Shown here piece after piece: positions 3,583-51,110 of a DNA stretch of 64,000 nucleotides. The position numbers and the translations under genes are program-made. Positions within the stretch are counted from its first letter, which is position 1; every line of letters starts with the position of its first letter. The notes beneath the pieces are model-generated. The model made no database searches. It worked only from the letters and a program-made list of their open reading frames with translations, and had not been told where the DNA came from. The DNA is from Kudoa neothunni (lineage: Eukaryota; Animalia; Cnidaria): assembly GCA_964304625.1 (NCBI GenBank), contig OZ199838.1, positions 7,086,035 through 7,150,034 of the forward strand, given 5' to 3'.

Positions 3583-6500
3583 GGAAGTGGCTATTCTTAC
3601 GACAACGAATATCTTTTTTCTTACTAAAGAAATTTTAAATCTGAATTTAAAAACATGTTATTACATTTTTTTCCTACAAAAATTCAAGTTTTTATAAATT
3701 ATTATTGCAATAAAACTAATACATATATTTTGGCCTTATTTCGCCGTTACAAGTACTGAAAATGATTAAAACCAGATATTCATTAACATTTACGACATTT
3801 TAAAGCATTTCTGAATCGAAAAAAAATGAAAATTGTGCTAATGTAACTTCATTTGCAATGGAGACCATTAGCCCACGTGTCAATGTTACGGTCTGGTACG
3901 GACTAATTGTTTGAAATGGTATCATTTTATAAGATATTTACAGAAAAATACAACTAATATTAATCAATTTCAGAAATTTGTTTAAGCCGAATAAACCGAA
4001 CTCAAAAAATCATATGTCATCACTTCATAATTCAAGTTATTTAACATCAAAATATAAATCGAAATACATAATTAGCAACCAATATTTGGGAAATATCATA
4101 ATTAATTAACTTTTATTATCAATTATCTATTGAAATTTTATTTTTGTTTTTTCTTCGGAAGTCCAATAGTAGTTAATCTGCTACCCCTGGGCCTTCCGAC
4201 AGACTTGACTTTGGATGGAATGGGTATATCTAAAAATTTTTTATAATTAATAAAAAATTAGTTACTTTTATATGTATCCTTAGTTTTTTCCTGATTCATA
4301 CTTTTACTAGCAAAGCTTTCAGCTAAATACATTACCATCAGTTAGTATTATAGTTAGTTTACCGTATTTTTCTTCAGTATATTCATCATCTTAGTTTAAA
4401 TTATATAAATAAAATATTTTCATTCACGAAATACCTGTGTAAGACAATTCACTCTCAGGATTGGAGGATAAGATTTCAATGAAAGCGTTATCTTCTCTCA
4501 AATTTATTTTCACTAATATACTTTACACATTTGCAACAAATAGTAAATAACTTAGTTCATTTATAGTAGACATCATTTTCGTATCATGATTTTTAATCAC
4601 ACATTCAAGTCTTCTGAAAACTTCAATGGAAGTTTGAAAGTAATCTCCGCAAAACTCTGCAGATGTAGCCGCCAACTTTTTTGTAAGCATTGAAGACAGT
4701 TTTAATCTTTGAGAAAAGGTTTGGATAGTGTCTTTAGGTTTGATTTTTACAACTCCCTCATCATGAAAATCTTTAAAATTGTTAACATTTAGAATATTTA
4801 AGAAATTATTCGCATGCTCCCTAGTCCAACGAGAATGGCACAATGATTCATCAAACAAGTTGATTAAGTTGAGTGCACGTTTTTGTAGAATATGACGACA
4901 AGGAAGCTTGAATGCTTTATGCATTGAACAATTACAGGAGTAATAACTGGAATTTTCTTCTAAAGTGACTTCTTTTATTTTTGATAATTCTTCCTGGATT
5001 ATACTTGAAGAATAGGCCGTGAGATAATTATGATATTTTATGAAAGTCTCATTATCGTTGGAAGAATCGTATGGTTTTATTAGTTCCATAGCAATGGTGC
5101 TTTGCCGCTCAATCCTTTGTGATTTCAAAAATCGTAAGAAATTGTCGAAAAAATCACTCAAAGTTGAAAACTTTTTCACTACAGTTTTTAGTTTTGCATT
5201 AATGGATTCAATTCTGTTATTCGTTGTATTATTATAGTAATGCTCAGCCATACTTAATCCAATTATCCATTCCTGGTAAATGGGTAGCCAATTCTTTTTG
5301 AAATAATCATTAAGTTCCTCAACTCCGAGGTCAAAAAGTTCACAACATAGGCGGTCAAAATTGTCCATGTTCTAGACATAAGTCATTTTTTCTAATATTT
5401 GAAGAATAAGTGTTTTTGTTTCTGTTGTTATACCATACTTTCCGACTTTTATTTCCCGCTGGAACGCTTGTAATACATGGAATTTACATAGTATCAACTT
5501 TGTGGAAGGAAATACGAAACTTAAACATTTTCGTAACAAATGGTCTTCGTCAGTTATTATTGACATCGTTTTGGATTGTAACCACGGTGCAGCATCTAAC
5601 AATTCGTTCAGAAACCATGTTATGGCTTCTGCTGTCTCCTCATATAAAATACAGGCACTAGTGATATGGGTTAAACCAAAAGAGTCTTGAGATGCAGTTA
5701 AATAAAGAGGAGCTCTACAAATGCAATCGTCATTTGTTATAAAATAGGGTTTCGTACCTTGAATCCAACAGCTTTAAGTGGCATCTATGAATAATAGCTC
5801 AGGAAAACATTCAAGAACATGGAGCATTTCGTTATCCACGAAGAAAATTCCATTGACAGAATTTTCACTAGCAAGAATTTTAACTCTGCAATTATAATCA
5901 TTTTTCAATATTGTAATAACGGAGTCAATATTTTTCGGTTCGACGGTAGAAACAGTCTTTACATTATGGATAGATTTTAATGTAATTTTCTCTCCGGTTT
6001 CTTCGCTTAACTTACGTTGAATTAACCTTCTATTTGCTCTTAATGATATTAACTCCGATATTATTGGATCATCAAGGTTAATTTTTCTTTGTGGAGGAAG
6101 GTTTTCGAACATTCTTTGATCGCAGGAATGGTTATGGATTAAATTTAGCGATTTCACCTCCAAAAAGTTACCGTCCACAGTGCTCCGGAGCGAGATACTA
6201 AATGGGAATTCCTTCTAAAATGATAATTTGTTTCTATCTCCACTGCTTTTGCGTTTGTAAGGAACACCAAGAAACACACGTAATTAATGTCATAATAAAC
6301 CAACTGAGAATTTATGGATCTGTTTACTCTTCGTTGTGCATTTGAAATTTTTCTCGAATGTCTAATTTTTAAATTGCAAAAATGTTTTTCTTCGTATTCT
6401 TTCACTTTAATTTGTAACTTTTCATATGAATCAAGTTTCATTCCAATAAAGAAGTCAGCAGACTGTTCACAATCCATGATTTCCATAATACTGCGCAACA

Positions 6501-7263
6501 TAACGTTTTTACTTTAACATGTCTGGGGATATTAACAGACTCGTAAACAAATTGTTAATATGTGTAATGAATTACTAGTAAATATTATATTTTTTAAGAT
6601 AATTAATATTAGCAGGTTTTATCTTTTTGTTAAAATTATGCCGTATAATTATGTGGTGTAGGAAATAATCATTCTATCTAATTTTTAAGACAAAAATATT
6701 AATAAAATTGATTTAATGTAATTATTATGAAATACAATTAACCTCAATATCTTTCCAGATACTTAACCTGAAAAATATATATCATTTTGATCGAAATAAT
6801 AGGCAGTTATTATGTCGCTATACTCACCAAAATACATGAAGTATGTTTTGAACAAATTAGATTATTAATTTTAAACATAAGCTTTTAAAATTGCATTTTG
6901 GATCTAAATGTAATTAAAATGTGATGTAGTTCATTACGCAATAATCGAATGAGGTCTTAACATTGACACGTGGGCTAATGGTCTCCATTGCAAATGAAGT
7001 TATATTAGCACAATTTTCATTATTTTTCGATTCAGAAATGCTTTAAAATGTCGTAAATATTAATGAATATCTGGTTTTAATCATTTTCAGTACTTGTAAT
7101 GGCGAAATAAGGCCAAAATATATGTATTAGTTTTATTGCAATAATAATTTATAAAAACTTGAATTTTTGTAGGAAAAAAATGTAATAAAATGTTTTTAAA
7201 TTCAGATTTAAAATGTCTTTAGTAAGAAAAAAGATATTCGTTGTCGTAAGAATAGCCAGTGCC
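3583..7263 (-). mobile_element. Mutator (MULE) transposon with ~305-bp TIRs and 9-bp TSD
   Basis: 3583-~3888 is nearly identical to the reverse complement of ~6958-7263. TSD ATATATAAA at 3574-3582 and 7264-7272. Confidence 0.93.
4139..6501 (-). pseudogene. Intron-containing MULE transposase (ZSWIM1/3-like, SWIM finger), disrupted
   Basis: Motifs LFIDAT, IITDED, LCKFHVLQ, TTNNRIES and SWIM CNCSMHKAFKLPCRH. Terminal exon IPIPSKVKSVGRPRGSRLTTIGLPKKKQK* at ~4139-4230. 43-nt GT-AG intron at 5715-5757. Frameshifts and stops are present. Confidence 0.85.
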
Positions 7264-8592
7264 ATATATAAAAGAGGACTGTCGGTATGTTTGTTTGTGT
7301 ATGTGTCAGTGTGTGTATGTCCCTAAGTACGCATGTGCGGATAATTTTTTCCTTATAGAGAGCCATATATAAAATTTTTATAAATTTTCGATATTTAAAA
7401 AAATCGTTTAATTGTTTTCGGACTACGAAAGTTTCCAAAAAGTATTTATGAAATAGTGATTTTGTCGATTTAAAGTTTGTTTTTCGGATTAAATGAGTTC
7501 AACTATAGGATTAGCACTTGGTTATTTCATGGTTATGGTCGGTTGAAGTTAACTATCTCCTTTATATGCTCCATCATATGTTCATTAGCTGCTTCTATCT
7601 ATCTATCTATCTTTATATATAAGGTTGGCGTTTCTATTTGGGTGTCTGTTTAAACACACTCCTTATTTGCGGAGTTTTAACGTATATGACTTGGTAAGTA
7701 TATTTTATAAGTTCTATTAATGGCTTTCAATGTGATAAAAAATCTATATATGTTTCATAAATAACGAATTCGTGGAGAACGTTAAAGTTACGTTGATTGA
7801 AGCGTTATGATGGAAATACTGCGTTCATAGGTTTCATTAAATTGTCCGCTAAGTTTTACTTTATGTGATTAAATCCAATGCGGATGGTTGTACTTTTGTT
7901 TCACCAAATTACTTAAATTGTTTATGTTGAAATCGACGCAATTTGTAGTTGTTTACGATAAAAGCGCATGTATGTTTATGCCGAGCTAAGCGATGCTAAT
8001 TTTAGCAATATCGATTAATTTTCATAATTTTTAAATTTTTTTATCTCTTAAAAAGTTAGTGGTGCATCCAGTTACCGAGCCACGAAATTTTTAAATGGAC
8101 GCCGGGATTGATACTTTCCTTCACAGAAATTATAATAATTTAAATTACATAACCCAAATCGTTATGGTAAGTTGCTTAAAAATTTTTAGTTATTTTGTTT
8201 TTATGGGTTAATTCGAGATTTCAATATATTTTTTGAATGCTATTAAAAAAAGCCTCTAGGCGAAATCTTCCCCAAGCAACGCTGGGCAGTTCCAGCTAGT
8301 ATTAGCTATGCTCCCTAATTTCGAGCTTATAAATATAACCAGTATTTTTTATTGATTTCAGATTTTGTCTAACGCGCTTTTTATTAATTTTGAAATGTGT
8401 CCGATTTATTATGAAATACCCTGTGAACCGTTTTTGTAATAAAATAAAATATAAGAAGAATAGTTAGCTGATTAATATTTAGTTATTTGCCTTAAACATA
8501 CAAAACTAATTAAAACAAAATTAATCTTATAACCTGTCACACATGCATCATTATTATGGAATGAGACACAATCTTTAAGATGAGTTTTTTCC

Positions 8593-8626
8593 CAATCTCG
8601 CCCCAGGAAATCCTGGGGCGAGATTG
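8593..8626. repeat. Perfect 16-bp GC-rich inverted repeat with 2-nt loop
   Basis: CAATCTCGCCCCAGGA-AA-TCCTGGGGCGAGATTG. Confidence 0.9.
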
Positions 8627-9282
8627 TGGTTGGGCATTTCATGCACTAAGGTTTATTCAAATTTATATTGCTTGTATGCAATAAATTAATTTTAAGTTTT
8701 ATCTAAATATTCATTATCCGAAAAAAATTCTAATAAATCATGAATAAATTTATAAATTTCATATAATTGTGTAACAATCTTACCTTAAGAGAAACTATAC
8801 GATACATTCTCTGTTATTTTCGTTAGGCTCACATTTCACAAAAACATTTACTAATGTTAAAGTTTTTGTAGATAGATGAATTAATACAATTAATTAGTGA
8901 TTTTCTATTCATACCATGATTATTTATGACAACCTGACTGATTTGTGATTTCTTCCAGGCGGAGATCCCATAAGTTGCTGCTATGCTCCACTGAAAATAA
9001 CGCTAATATTCAAAACATGCAAACAGCTTTTTTAGTATCCTATTAAAATATCAAGATATATCCCCCTTTTAATTTCACCATTTCGTTACCAGTTCTATGG
9101 ATTAATTATCAATCTAGATAGTTTTTTTCTATTTATAAATTAATCTGGTTAGTTAATGCAGAACACACCTTTTCGAATGCTATTTCAACAAAAGCTTGGT
9201 CTAAGCAATAATATTATTTTAAAATTCTAAGCATCGAATTTAAAGAAAAAATACTTGCAATACATGTAGATCAAGACTATTT

Positions 9283-11560: not shown

Positions 11561-11633
11561 AGGCGTCGACGGGATTCGAACCCGCGATCTTGTATTTACG
11601 AGACACACGCCTTAACCACTTGGCCACGACGCC
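11561..11633 (-). tRNA. tRNA-Thr (CGT)
   Basis: 73-nt cloverleaf: GGCGTCG/CGACGCC acceptor stem, TGTGT-CTCGTAA-ATACA anticodon arm, GGTTCGAATC T-loop, discriminator T. Confidence 0.93.
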
Positions 11634-46530: not shown

Positions 46531-47787
46531 TATATCGATCAGATTTTCCTCCGCATTTTCCTCTAACTCATTTATTACGCCAAGGTATAGATTATACTGC
46601 TAGTTCTCCATTTTATGACAAAATTATCGCCGTAGATTATAGGTTGCGTTTGCGCAACAAAAATTGATCCTTATATTAAACTTTAAAGGAAACTTTTTAG
46701 ATCGTTTCTTTCAGTTTTAAGACAATTATCTTGTCATGATCTAATTATTTTTAAATTATTGGTATCATTGAGCTTAACGCTATACAATAAATGGAGGAAT
46801 ATGAAAATCCTTCAAAGATGACCTATTGCGCGTTTAATTATAGTCACTTTTTAAATTGCAGAAATTTTTTCATAAAAAAATAAAGATTTATGTATTTTTC
46901 TAAGTATTAAAACATTTTTGTACCATCGTACCCACAAACGTATGAGAAAAATAATAACAAAGTCTTTTTGCGTTAACTCACGTATAGTCTATAGTCTATA
47001 TGGGTTAAATCGACGGAATTGAGTGATGATTTCAAATTAGGCTCGAAATATGTTTTGTTTAATTTTGTAAGTAGATAAAGTTTCAAGATCATCATTAAAA
47101 TCAAAATGATAAGGAGAAACCAATGTTAGTAAAAATTCATCGCTATGAATGATAAAAGCGGGACAAAGACCCCTTTTGGGTTGCTCATAACGTGATCTTC
47201 TGAGCAAACAGCATTGGCAGAATTTGAATTTATTAGAATGTATTGTAAGAATTTATGATCTTGAGTTGATGTATAATCACTGAGTTTTGCTGATGTCGAA
47301 AATTCATCATCTTGAACTAACTGGACTGGATCGGAACAAATATATTATTGGTGTTTCAAATTATCCACTGAAACAACAGTTTGAGAGAATATTTGATTAT
47401 TCCGATTTGGAGAACAATAGACAGATATATAACTTGTCGATATAGGAGATGTATTGGCATCAGAAAGTGACGTGTTGTTGTTTTCAGCATTGTTACTTGC
47501 TCTTAGCTGATTCTTTATCAAATTATGACGTTGACTCTGGTTGAATAACACGCTAGAGTCAAGTTGTTTTGTATACACTTCTTAGCGTTATGTGACGATC
47601 CAATATTTGAACTGCTAACAAAAAACAAGATAACTGCTTCATTTTCCATCGCTTATATTCTTCATAGAGTTATTCAGGAGAGTGTAACACCTGTTCGCCA
47701 TCATAAATACGATCATTTAAATCAGCACAAAAAGTTACTTCAAAAAAAAGGTCTGTTGATAAGCTGATTAAGGGTGTACGCAAAACG

Positions 47788-47843
47788 CGAACGAGGTGAC
47801 ACTTGAACCCACAATCTTCTAATCTTCTGATACGAATACAGCG
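47788..47843 (-). pseudogene. Partial, decayed tRNA-Arg (anticodon arm to 3' end)
   Basis: ATCAGAAGATT[AGAAGATT]GTGGGTTCAAGTGTCACCTCGTTCG aligns to ATCAGGAGACTGTGGGTTCGAGTCCCACCTCGCTCG of the intact tRNA at 51038-51110. It is also followed by TTTT. Confidence 0.75.
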
Positions 47844-48500
47844 TATACATTCTACATAATTAGTCAACTAACTAATAATAAATAGAATTTCCAAAAATTC
47901 TTCAATTTTGAGCGCGATGAGGGCCACGATGGTTGATCCACATAGCATGAGATTGTTCGGGGAGTCGGCGAGAAATCAATTTTTGCAAAAGCTTCGGCGT
48001 TTTCCAAAAACGCCCAAATGCTAATACGCGATATTGTTCTTCTCATAGTTGGTCCCAAGGGAACCACATATCAGAGCAAAGGTCTTAACGTTGAAACCAG
48101 CAGCTTCGAGGAGTTCAACTTCACGGTCGTATTTCTAGACCTTCGAGTTGTACACTTCCTCCATTCTTACCGAATTATTTTCGTAGCAGATACCAACGTC
48201 CATAATTATGGCCTTTTTCGTGAGGTGATTACAGAGAAAAATATTCGGGCGTCGATCACCAGGGATAAAGGGGATGGTTCTGTCGATGGAAAATTGCCAA
48301 TTTCTCTTAACTTTGATTTCCTCCGCAAAACGAAAACTTAGCACCATTTAAGCATGCGCGGTAAGAGAAAAACAAGGCTATAATTAGGGCATGCAATTTT
48401 CGACGTTTATTTTTAGAACAATCGCCGTTTTTATGCATCATGCGGATTATACTTCGGTCTGCCCAAACACACCTATGACGCAAATGAAAACACAAATTAA
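47844..48500 (-). mobile_element. 3' end of an RLE-type (R2/R4/NeSL-like) non-LTR retrotransposon
   Basis: RRP(D>N)IFL...AIIMDVGI...SKV*KY...VVPLG restriction-like endonuclease pattern. Probable C-terminus SHAMWINHRGPHRAQN* (TGA 47902-47904). No RT domain is recognisable. Confidence 0.75.
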
Positions 48501-48669
48501 CATTAGGTAGAATCTAATGTAGTCATTTTTAATTTCTCCATTGTAATATAGTTGAAATATTATAGATGTTTTTTCATTCGAAAGCGATGTTCTCTCTTTT
48601 GAAAGAACATGTCTCATCTTAGAAAAACTTCAACCTACCGCAATTGAAGACAACGGGATGTTTAAAACA

Positions 48670-49697
48670 GGTAAAAATGCAGAATATAGCCCGCACGTGC
48701 GCAAATACTCCACGAGGATTAACGAAAACACCGCTAAAATGAAATTGTTACAAATTGTTGCTTATCTATCTAATTACAACAACGTATTAAGTTTTTGTTT
48801 CAATAATAAACTTATATCAATATCAAAAGTTTGTCCTCGTTGTGGAATGCAAATGAGATTAATCGATTTTAATAATATTGACAATCTAATTTGGAGATGC
48901 CGTTTAAATGGTTGTGACACAAAGCTTTCGATACGATCCAGTTCTTTTTTTAGCAATTCAAAGATGCCACTTTCAAAAATTATTCTTTTTATTAATTTGT
49001 GGGTGAATAACTACCCATCTAGAATAATAATTAATGATTTTGAGTATGCATCCCATACAGTAGTGGATTGGAATCGTTTTATAAGAAAACTATGTGTTGA
49101 AAATTATGATCGAAATCTCACCAATAAGATAGGAGGACGAAATAAAATTGTGGAGCTTGATGAAACTCTCATTATCCGCCGTAAATATAATCGCGGGAGA
49201 GTTATAAAAGAACAATGGCTCTTCGGAGGGATATGTCGCAAACAAGATGAAAACCAAAATTTTGAAGCTTTTATTGAGTTTGTTGACGACAGAACGGCAT
49301 CAACTCTTCTTGAAATTATTCAACGAAGAATTGAGCCAGGTACTACTATTATTACTGACGGATGGTGAGGTTACAACAATATTGGGCAGCTTGGGATGAA
49401 TCATTTTGTAATCATACATGACGAAAACTTTGTTGATCCGGAAAATCATGAGGTCCATACCCAAAACATTGAAAATCTTTGGCTACGTTTAAAAAGACTA
49501 CTACGAGCCAAAGGAACCCACAGAAGCCCCCATGACTGGGAATACATCGCCGAATTTTTGTTTAGAAAACAAAAAAACATTTATTTAGTGCGCTAATAAA
49601 TGAGATAACTTTAAACTATCACTTATAAATTATTATAATTTTCGTTAATCCTCGTGGATTATTTGCGCACGTGCGGGCCCTATTCTGCATTTTTACC
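48670..49697 (+). mobile_element. Merlin (IS1595-like) transposon, ~59-bp TIRs, near-intact transposase 48739-49596
   Basis: GGTAAAAATGCAGAATA... / ...TATTCTGCATTTTTACC. Motifs CPRC..WRC..C, VELDET, RRKYNRGR, WLFGG, ITDGW and HTQNIENLW. Single stop at 49366-49368. No TSD. Confidence 0.93.
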
Positions 49698-49770
49698 GGG
49701 CCATATCCTAAATTTTTTGTTGTACGGTACAGAGTTCATAAACAGAACTTGTCGAATAGTGAGTTTTTTC

Positions 49771-50677
49771 TGCCAAAATACGGCACAAGGACACTTATCG
49801 GACGTTGTCGTTGCGCATCGGAGATAAAATAAAACATGTAAAAGAACATTAATCTAGAGACTTCATAAATTGTTCTAATGAAAATTGATAAAACATTTTG
49901 TGGGAATATTTTTTAAAATGATAATTGGTCAAGTAAGAAGGCATCAATCCCGATTTTTTATTTGTGATGTATCTGAACTTGCGTTTGATTGCACCCCAAA
50001 TAGCCTCTATTAGGTTAGTATGCACACCTTCAGAAGTCTTAAACTCGATGCTATGATTTACTGAGTTGTGAACAACCTAGATGAGCTAAATTATGATAAG
50101 CTGGTCATTTGTCCGTCCACAGAGTTGAGCCCTAATACAATTTTGAAGTATCATATCTTCAAAAAGGGCTTGGATGCGTTCCTCAGTAAGGACTTGGAAA
50201 AAATTTCCAACAGGATCAATCCCTCCCACGGTGATATTTCCGCTTACAAATCTATGATTCGTCTATTTGTATAATTACATCGACCCCACCGATAGAAGGC
50301 CTGTGAATATTGAAATATTCTATATAAATTTCCCTTGTATAATTTTTCCAATCACATAGTTTCTCTTGACGAGATTTTAGTTCGTTTCCTAATTGAAACT
50401 TTACTGTTACATTGGCAACAACGAGATGTGTAGCCATCCGTTATGTTAAATTGTTTCAATGCCATCGCTGGGTGGCACTGATCAAAATCCTTCGTTTTAG
50501 GATGCAATCCAACATGTTGCACGAATAAAACAAAATTTATATTATCATTTTTAAAACCGAAAACATCCTCTAAAAGAAAACCGTAAGGAATTAAGGAAGA
50601 TAAACTTATGTTTCCGGCTGATTCGCGAACATCCACGACAACACCCGAAAAACGTGATTTGCACCGTACTTTAGCCC
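49771..50677 (-). mobile_element. Second, decayed Merlin element
   Basis: Motifs IGGVDVIIQIDES, KRKYHRGR and VNHSIEFKTSEGVHTNLIEAIWG. Degenerate TIRs GCCAAAATACGG.. / GCTAAAGTACGG.. Confidence 0.8.
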
Positions 50678-51037
50678 TTATCTACGTTACCTTCAGCTCT
50701 CAGACGATTCATCGAAAGGTTTAGACTTTGACGTGCAGAGAACAACGTGTCGGTGTTAAACTGCCTTGTTTATACAGTTAGGCGCTCCAGAGCGTCCCGA
50801 TATTTAGATAGAAGCAAAGAGCAACAAAAATGCTTCCATTTTTTCCGTTTGTATTCTTCATAGATTGCTTCCAGCGAGAGCAACAAATTACTTTGTTACA
50901 CGTGATCGCCATAAAAGTGCAAAATCAGTCTTCTTGGCATTGTATTAAGTTAAAAATAGCGTCGTTAGGATCCGCAATTGATATCAAGTCTAAAGAAAGC
51001 AAAACAAAAAGTTAAATCATTAATTAGGCTAAAAGTG

Positions 51038-51110
51038 CGAGCGAGGTGGGACTCGAACCCACAGTCTCCTGATTCGTAGTCAGACGCCTTAGCCATTGGG
51101 CCACACGCCC
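51038..51110 (-). tRNA. tRNA-Arg (ACG)
   Basis: 73-nt cloverleaf with TCTGA-CTACGAA-TCAGG anticodon arm and GTGGG-TTCGAGT-CCCAC T-arm. One T:T mismatch in the acceptor stem. TTTT lies 4 nt downstream. Confidence 0.9.

Follow-up and report, generated by a model that had tools for sequence, protein, structure and literature searches.

A fossil stack of tRNA-Arg-specific retrotransposons in Kudoa neothunni, and related elements behind other intact tRNA genes of its genome

Introduction

How can a retrotransposon enter a tRNA gene and leave a whole tRNA gene in its place? The question is raised by a locus in a 64,000-nucleotide stretch of the genome of the cnidarian Kudoa neothunni (GenBank assembly GCA_964304625.1, contig OZ199838.1, positions 7,086,035 to 7,150,034 of the forward strand), which we call the window. 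On its minus strand, an intact gene for tRNA-Arg is followed by the remains of a retrotransposon of the restriction-like endonuclease (RLE) type and then by a second, partial copy of the same tRNA, behind which similar remains begin again. An original prediction, made by a model from the letters of the window, held that the element inserts within tRNA-Arg and duplicates or carries the 3' half of the gene. We show here that the window holds a fossil stack, two copies deep, from a lineage of RLE (R2-type) retrotransposons without long terminal repeats (non-LTR elements) that is specific for tRNA-Arg(ACG), and that related elements sit behind about half of the tRNA genes examined in this genome. 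We favour a reading in which the duplicated tRNA half derives from the target as a long target-site duplication, with a probability of about 0.6.

Two dead copies behind an intact tRNA-Arg gene

Features of the window were read along the minus strand, from position 51110 downward, and lie on that strand unless stated. The intact tRNA-Arg(ACG) gene (51038-51110) expected at the start of the segment was recovered by ARAGORN (51037-51110) and by Rfam (RF00005, 51038-51110, 59 bits). A DNA search of the organism's own genome, a 40-Mb assembly in four contigs, found no second copy. Directly behind the gene, a T-run tRNA trailer leads into the 5' untranslated region (UTR) of a first element copy, copy 1 (50973-51037, read directly and supported by a family profile match at 50922-51012). 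It is followed by a remnant of the family's start-codon motif, found by motif search at 50960-50972, which reads GATTCTAACGATG in live copies and GATCCTAACGACG here, the ATG having been lost. Segment X (50686-50959) is the decayed N-terminal coding region of copy 1, recognised from its alignment to a second segment, X', from its YEEYKR codons and from its resemblance to the K/R-rich N-terminal pattern ...YR.L..L of live copies.

The C-terminal end of copy 1 survives as an open reading frame (ORF) remnant at 47902-48630, comprising the region before the CCHC motif and the RLE endonuclease (tblastn and translations). Using three full-length relatives as queries, tblastn matched the RLE remnant at 48344-47929 (E = 5e-20), and weak collinear matches extend the ORF remnant up to ~48626. 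The motifs RRPNI, MDVGICYE and K.*KY are still readable in a sequence damaged by frameshifts, two in-frame stops and a change of PD to PN. The stop codon, a TGA at 47904-47902, lies where it had been predicted and is in frame with the family's C-terminal signature SH.MW.NH. The reverse transcriptase (RT) domain of copy 1 has been deleted, and tblastn found no RT in the window copies.

The 3' UTR of copy 1 (47832-47901; direct reading and comparison of family junctions) ends in CTGTATTCGT, the Arg version of a 3'-terminal TTGTAT(T/A)ATTA motif found across the family. It runs directly into a decayed tRNA-Arg 3' part (47788-47831, tRNA positions 38-73) that contains an internal 8-nt duplication, AGAAGATT. 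The junction thus reads ...CTGTATTCGT followed by ATCAGAAG and falls at tRNA position 37/38. Besides direct reading, the fragment is identified by a 22-nt T-arm probe which, with up to three mismatches allowed, matched only 51042-51063 and 47792-47813, where none were expected by chance. The prediction had seen this fragment, and its presence holds; its start, given as 47843 behind a 58-nt tail, most likely moves to 47831. The tail is then ~70 nt long, since the 12 bases before 47831 (CTGTATTCGT...) agree with the 3' terminus shared across the family. For the same reason we rejected 47843, which would put the start in the anticodon stem, where the planarian element LIN15_SM has it; the bases there also match the tRNA at 6 of 10 positions, which leaves some doubt.

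Behind the orphan fragment, a second trailer and the 5' UTR of copy 2 (47711-47787, direct reading) end in a start motif, GATTTAAATGATC, at 47711-47723. The 5' UTR and X' region of this copy matches, by eye, the 5' UTR of the element behind tRNA-Ser. The decayed N-terminal coding region of copy 2, X', follows at 47490-47710 and was delimited by alignment to X. Over ~200 nt, X (50686-50885) and X' (47492-47689) align with a local score of 76 against 26.7 +/- 3.6 for shuffled sequences (z = 13.6) at a divergence of ~38%, and their YEEYKR codons differ by three synonymous changes (tac/tat, aaa/aag, cgg/cga), as had been noticed from the letters. X' had been drawn from ~47750 to 47100; its homology to X is clear, and its extent is verified only to ~47490. 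Beyond X' nothing recognisable of copy 2 was found, and tblastn gave no RT or RLE match downstream. A possible third junction or copy near 47200 was rejected (alignment z about -0.3 against shuffles), as was a start-motif match at 47090-47102, which is at chance level.

The orphan tRNA fragment differs from the 3' part of the intact gene by ~19% plus the 8-nt duplication. Given this decay and the difference between X and X', both Arg copies are old, and they are dead fossils.

A family of RLE retrotransposons with full-length members

The 70-aa RLE piece of the window hits the genome at 31 places, many of which lie in open frames of 1645-1901 aa and in arrays with a spacing of 5.6-6 kb. The best match other than itself is 47% identical, and a live copy of the Arg lineage is absent from the genome. 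In three full-length relatives, RVT_1 was detected with E = 6e-34 to 6e-37, and these proteins align to solved R2 proteins (9nl3, 9dou, 8gh6) over the RT and over CCHC plus RLE with E = 3e-77 to 1e-56. The catalytic motifs CCHC, RHN, RPD[IL], D.V.YE and K..KY are in place. The relatives therefore have the make-up of RLE-type elements, a non-LTR RT in a single long ORF with a C-terminal CCHC motif and a PD-(D/E)XK endonuclease.

An intact tRNA gene stands directly before each of the three full-length ORFs (Gln-UUG, Asn-GUU and Ser-AGA); the search for full-length copies had been suggested by the original prediction. At occupied loci the ORFs begin 48-92 nt behind the intact tRNA gene. A profile built from the first 360 nt behind 15 other occupied tRNAs matches 50922-51012 of the window in register (E = 1.2e-4), and elsewhere such 5' regions lead into ORFs with RT and RLE. 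We conclude that X is what remains of the 5' UTR and the N-terminal coding part of a member of this family, which bears out the link between X and the RLE that the prediction had drawn.

The ~900 aa that precede the RT (L021:3596-6600, L028:1880-4950 and L030:3409-6018) yielded no Pfam domain, no C2H2 pattern and no zinc-finger or Myb match, and an ESM Atlas feature search with this region was uninformative (best score 0.81). It is the most divergent part of the protein between lineages, at 27-30% identity against 46% for the RT-RLE region, a pattern that would fit a role in target choice. The start-codon motif GCTGAATCTAACGATG, 48-92 nt behind occupied tRNAs (L033-L062), is kept even though the N-terminal proteins share only 27-30% identity from lineage to lineage; it makes up the 5' arm of a 12-15-nt hairpin in the Ser and Val-AAC lineages. 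No general inverted repeat was found that pairs the trailer with the 5' UTR.

In a quick tree of the RT-RLE region, which was built without labelled NeSL, R5, LIN or R4 references, the family forms a well-supported clade of its own, apart from the R2-labelled group and from the YURECi/Phytophthora group. The prediction had named YURE as a family that targets tRNA-Arg. This does not hold: the elements do not group with YURECi (Q76IM9), which shows 31% identity across 58% of the query and sits in another starred clade, and YURE itself has only a weak preference for a U2-derived satellite (PMC4640811). Nor are they R2 proper, given their tRNA targets, the lack of a zinc-finger or Myb match and their separate clade, or NeSL proper, for which the ~900-aa N-terminal region gave no Pfam match and no C2H2 pattern. 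They share with the NeSL clade and R5/LIN the habit of inserting at a specific site inside a small-RNA gene, their junctions falling at tRNA positions 36-40.

Two further observations concern individual elements. The Asn element carries ~40 A's just after its stop codon (L028:7216-7255), well upstream of its true 3' end. For the Gln element (L021:3300-9250), one Logan contig from DNA run X1 joins position 5106 to 8895, skipping 3788 bases, which suggests that an internally deleted copy was present in the sequenced sample. In DNA contigs, the depth of the Gln element is ~6-fold that of its flank.

Half of the tRNA genes examined are occupied

The Rfam tRNA search of the genome scored 38 tRNA genes, a lower bound, and 31 tRNA loci were examined (30 fetched ones and the tRNA-Arg of the window). 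Nearly every anticodon occurs once, and the tRNA gene set looks minimal. tRNA-Gly(GCC) is found twice, ~10 kb apart, with flanks identical over at least 260 nt.

Starting from the elements, a tRNA on the same strand lies 2.6-11 kb upstream at 12 of 14 RLE loci, against a chance of ~0.005 per locus. Starting from the tRNAs, 16 of the 31 loci are occupied, that is, have the element's 5' UTR or start motif and/or an ORF 48-92 nt behind the tRNA: Arg-ACG, Gln-UUG, Gln-CUG, Asn, Ser-AGA, Lys-UUU, Lys-CUU, Phe, Thr-UGU, Thr-AGU, Cys, Val-CAC, Val-AAC, Ile, Gly-UCC and Met. One further array is joined by halves of another tRNA. Each occupied tRNA has its own element lineage, and at least 17 tRNA species have been colonised.

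The acceptor stem of tRNA-Arg(ACG) has one U6.U67 mismatch and one G2.U71 pair (stem check). All 30 other tRNAs checked are free of acceptor-stem mismatches, and the stems of the 15 other occupied tRNAs are fully paired. The other tRNA gene of the window, tRNA-Thr(CGU) at 11561-11633 (minus strand), is unoccupied, with no start motif or element ORF within 1.5 kb behind it.

Junctions and arrays

Behind the stop codon of full-length elements we found a tail of 60-200 nt, then the same tRNA from just after its anticodon, a T-rich trailer and usually the next element. These tRNA halves escaped an Rfam scan run with a permissive E-value and were located by eye and with a script. The tRNA part begins at positions 36-40, with an ambiguity of 1-3 nt from shared A/T bases. 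This type of junction was found in the Gln, Asn, Ser, Lys-UUU, Phe, Thr-UGU and Arg lineages and in one further tRNA lineage. When junctions are tabulated, as had been proposed for a check, at least eight lineages have a whole tRNA gene at the element's 5' end and, at its 3' end, a piece of tRNA whose starting position is nearly constant. Of the two contrary outcomes named beforehand, X without an RT/RLE ORF and random flanks at other copies, neither was seen. The elements themselves end in the conserved TTGTAT(T/A)ATTA-like motif (also written TTGTATTATTA) across lineages, the Gln lineage ending differently.

At every junction the duplicated block measures at least 50 bp. In the Gln array, the tRNA part and its 58-nt trailer are identical among variants that are 12-19% apart in protein, and similarity falls sharply right after. 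At the Thr-UGU locus (L065/L066, G000:C1:15569445-15578423), the copy that follows the intact tRNA and the one that follows the orphan half agree at 99% over ~310 nt, spanning the tRNA part, the trailer, the 5' UTR and ~170 nt of ORF, and then drop to ~60%. The Thr-UGU orphan half has a 4-nt GTCT duplication.

The head-to-tail arrays that had been predicted exist, and they hold diverged variants and even foreign lineages; they are therefore not simple tandem duplications. The order in the Gln array is A A B A A C H D, and some block duplication within arrays is likely. Element H, behind the L011 junction of the Gln-UUG array, resembles the element of the Gln-CUG locus (75% over 774 nt, score 565) more closely than it does array-mate A (68%, score 225). 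Similarly, the type-2 elements of the Lys-UUU array align only to the element of the Lys-CUU locus (68% over 574 nt). Element H is flanked by the local Gln-UUG tRNA half both upstream and downstream, and the type-2 elements are flanked upstream by the local tRNA half. In the Asn and Gln arrays, the tRNA fragments farther from the intact gene are more decayed, a gradient that fits repeated insertion into a rebuilt gene, with the newest copy adjoining the tRNA.

The same layout occurs in a related organism. A 5.9-kb contig from another public sample (L063, ENA ERZ795007) encodes a protein 66% identical to that of the present family, and its successive elements, which belong to different variants, are linked by tRNA-Gln 3' halves that begin immediately after the anticodon. 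In a more distant relative (P0003, a 426-kb contig), no tRNA was found at the element ends.

Merlin insertions into copy 1

Between X and the RLE remnant, copy 1 is interrupted by Merlin insertions, as had been proposed. The inner one, on the plus strand at 48670-49697, is a short Merlin (IS1595-like) DNA transposon with 59-bp, 95% identical terminal inverted repeats at 48670-48728 and 49639-49697. Between the repeats lie two collinear DDE_Tnp_IS1595 matches of 25.4 and 17.8 bits, below the Pfam cut-off of 27; a transposase of this type between terminal inverted repeats is what places the insertion in the Merlin/IS1595-like group. The outer one (minus strand, ~49698-50680, approximate boundaries) is a second Merlin-like transposase remnant, seen as ORFs with IQIDES and HTNLIEAIW motifs; the piece with HTNLIEAIW spans ~49850-50640, and no Pfam match in the remnant reached threshold.

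How the tRNA half may have come to be duplicated

We infer that the upstream tRNA half is probably target-derived. The endonuclease would nick the gene at tRNA positions 36-40, on the anticodon loop's 3' side, and the element RNA would be reverse-transcribed onto this nick, which would explain why the element's 3' end is joined to tRNA position 38. If the second-strand break then fell downstream of the tRNA 3' end and of the first T-run terminator, the tRNA 3' part and the terminator would both be duplicated, and the target-site duplication would span ~50 bp or more. The element would then have a whole tRNA gene with its own terminator in front of it and an orphan 3' part behind it. The rebuilt gene could be hit again, and repeated hits would build head-to-tail piles whose youngest element adjoins the tRNA. 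In the window, copy 2 (X') would have arrived first and copy 1 later. Both would then have died, copy 1 being trimmed and invaded by Merlin transposons while the tRNA gene stayed whole.

The original prediction had left it open whether the element duplicates or carries the tRNA half, and had likened the arrangement to a prophage attP. In the carried version, the tRNA 3' part and trailer form the start of the element RNA; insertion at position 37/38 replaces the severed part of the gene with the copy that the element brings, and the gene's own 3' part ends up behind the element. The final structure is identical, and several trailers behave as a carried copy would: their T-run length tracks element type in the Lys-UUU array, the Gln-UUG and Gln-CUG trailers look homologous, and the identical block at Thr-UGU extends into the ORF. 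This trailer similarity is weak evidence, since T-rich bipartite trailers are found behind empty tRNAs too. What tells the two apart is whether the tRNA half follows the element or the locus. The answer is mostly confounded, and the two foreign-lineage cases track the locus: element H and the Lys-UUU type-2 elements have the local tRNA half, not that of the locus of their nearest kin, which favours a long target duplication. Moreover, a carried half would make a chimeric, mispaired version of a single-copy tRNA at every change of target, yet at least 17 species have been colonised and 15 of 15 other stems are paired; occupied tRNAs show no excess of mismatches between 5' and 3' halves, only tRNA-Arg(ACG) having its one U.U. 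The identity of the Gln tRNA part and 58-nt trailer across diverged variants also argues against a carried copy, which we regard as doubtful. Duplication is thus better supported than carrying, and the attP analogy fits the outcome more than the mechanism.

The same final arrangement would also result if the tRNA gene were never cut, that is, if the nick lay in the trailer downstream of the tRNA and the element carried the tRNA 3' part and trailer at its own 3' end, where they would help priming. Target-homologous 3' ends do aid priming in some site-specific non-LTR elements. However, across lineages with tRNA parts of unrelated sequence, the TTGTAT(T/A)ATTA motif directly abuts the tRNA part, the foreign-lineage element H has a downstream junction of the local Gln-UUG type, and the 3' flanks of LIN15_SM follow three different tRNA-Arg targets (PMC4640811), all of which makes insertion behind the gene improbable. 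Close to refuted is the view that the tRNA-Arg unit and its flank were simply duplicated locally and that an unrelated RLE element landed there by chance. It would account for the X/X' divergence (~38%) being about twice that between tRNA fragment and intact gene (~19%), as a tandem duplication would give. Against it, the family's 5' profile finds a match in X, more than ten other tRNA genes show this layout with intact ORFs, and the RLE tail stops exactly at tRNA position 38, as in other lineages; the three synonymous YEEYKR differences hint at coding constraint as well.

Several findings weigh against a target duplication as we have drawn it. The far edge of the duplicated block is not constant: it lies ~17 nt past the tRNA in Lys-UUU, ~20 nt in Asn, 58 nt in Gln and ~270 nt, well into the ORF, in Thr-UGU. 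In the related organism's contig it lies only ~8 nt past the tRNA, where two junctions share a common tRNA half and the trailers diverge together with the downstream variant, as a carried copy would have it. A fixed staggered cut does not predict such a variable edge, which could be explained by gene conversion between neighbours or by a second-strand break guided by homology between complementary DNA (cDNA) and target. Neither a filled/empty polymorphism nor a first-time insertion into a virgin tRNA gene was seen, and with single-copy tRNAs and one lineage per locus, locus and element are largely confounded. The foreign-lineage elements, 25-32% from their nearest kin, could be old residents adapted to the local tRNA. 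The U.U mismatch in the acceptor stem of tRNA-Arg(ACG) counts against a target origin too; the orphan 3' fragment has the same base, and the mismatch is therefore older than the insertion of copy 1. The Arg copies are themselves too decayed to reveal the mechanism. Finally, three RNA runs labelled as this organism gave 0, 0 and 2 reads on the active Gln element; these runs held no reads of the organism.

A more speculative possibility, to which we give little weight, is that the tRNA gene is part of the element's life cycle. The element RNA would be made as a run-on of the tRNA unit or be freed by tRNA 3' processing and would thus begin with target-like sequence, the cDNA end would pair with the displaced target strand, and the endonuclease would resolve the branch where homology ends. 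If true, this would explain why the tRNA 3' part and terminator lie within the block in every case although its outer limit ranges from 8 to ~270 nt, and the arrays would serve as a natural archive of the still poorly understood second half of non-LTR integration.

Discussion

The elements described here resemble R2 in their alignable RT, CCHC and RLE regions, with catalytic motifs in place, and differ from it in target (28S ribosomal DNA, rDNA, for R2), in duplication length and in an N-terminal region of ~900 aa that is far longer than that of R2. Another RLE element, R9 of bdelloid rotifers, reportedly described by Gladyshev and Arkhipova in 2009, is said to be specific for 28S rDNA and to leave a 126-bp target duplication. 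It would share with the present family widely spaced strand breaks and an unusually long target-site duplication; its rDNA target is multicopy, and its duplication is not known to rescue the function of a single-copy gene. A parallel in outcome is offered by temperate phages and integrative elements, whose insertion inside a tRNA gene yields a whole gene on one side and an orphan 3' part on the opposite side. They use a tyrosine or serine recombinase and a carried copy (an attP with the tRNA 3' end), whereas the present family has an RT and an RLE and a eukaryotic host, and a target duplication is favoured.

Published RLE elements specific for tRNA genes are NeSL-1_TV (tRNA-Pro), LIN15_SM (tRNA-Arg) and LIN25_SM (tRNA-Glu) (PMC4640811), the latter two from the planarian R5/LIN lineage (Kojima & Jurka 2015, PMC4640811). 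Like the Kudoa elements, they are RLE-type, have a single ORF and lie inside tRNA genes in the orientation of the gene, and LIN15_SM makes a long duplication; our comparison with LIN15_SM uses its published description. According to the S6 figure of that study, whose machine reading is noisy, LIN15_SM is found in three tRNA-Arg isoacceptors, each with its own downstream sequence (PMC4640811). It enters at about position 27, in the anticodon stem, and its single published 5' junction lies ~38 bp further downstream, inside the T arm (PMC4640811). In that example, the acceptor's 3' strand is therefore missing from the upstream copy, and the insertion does not restore the gene. In contrast, the duplication of the present family extends past the tRNA end and the terminator. 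Furthermore, the targets of LIN15_SM are multicopy, whereas those of the present family are mostly single-copy, with about half of the examined tRNA genes occupied.

Other elements use tRNA genes in different ways. Dictyostelium TRE5/TRE3 and DGLT-A and yeast Ty1/Ty3 likewise treat tRNA genes as safe havens in compact genomes; they are reported to insert at a distance via RNA polymerase III factors, next to any tRNA gene, to be apurinic endonuclease (APE)-type or LTR elements, and neither to cut nor to copy the tRNA sequence (PMC5006619, PMC5911963). Lineages of Dada DNA transposons target particular tRNA genes, several of them around the anticodon loop, but are DDE transposons that disrupt multicopy targets without restoring the gene (PMC8869645, PMC3706591).

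Retrotransposons of the RLE type that are specific for tRNA genes and make long target duplications are thus already known. What is new is that the duplication restores the tRNA gene, letting elements occupy about half of the examined, mostly single-copy tRNA genes. Full-text literature searches returned no described retrotransposon that restores its tRNA target or colonises single-copy tRNA genes.

Site-specific retrotransposons are thought to survive by using multicopy targets, where one broken copy costs little. Single-copy, essential tRNA targets in a compact genome bend this rule, and they are tolerated because insertion leaves a whole gene. The family is in this sense a eukaryotic, RT-based counterpart of phage integration into tRNA genes. 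It has been retargeted repeatedly, to at least 17 tRNA species, each with its own lineage and all with a constant entry point; such a series is useful for learning how RLE elements change target and bears on gene-insertion tools based on R2. The array junctions, in turn, record how the second-strand step was completed. The window adds a time dimension, showing a tRNA gene that is still whole long after its elements died and other transposons overran them.

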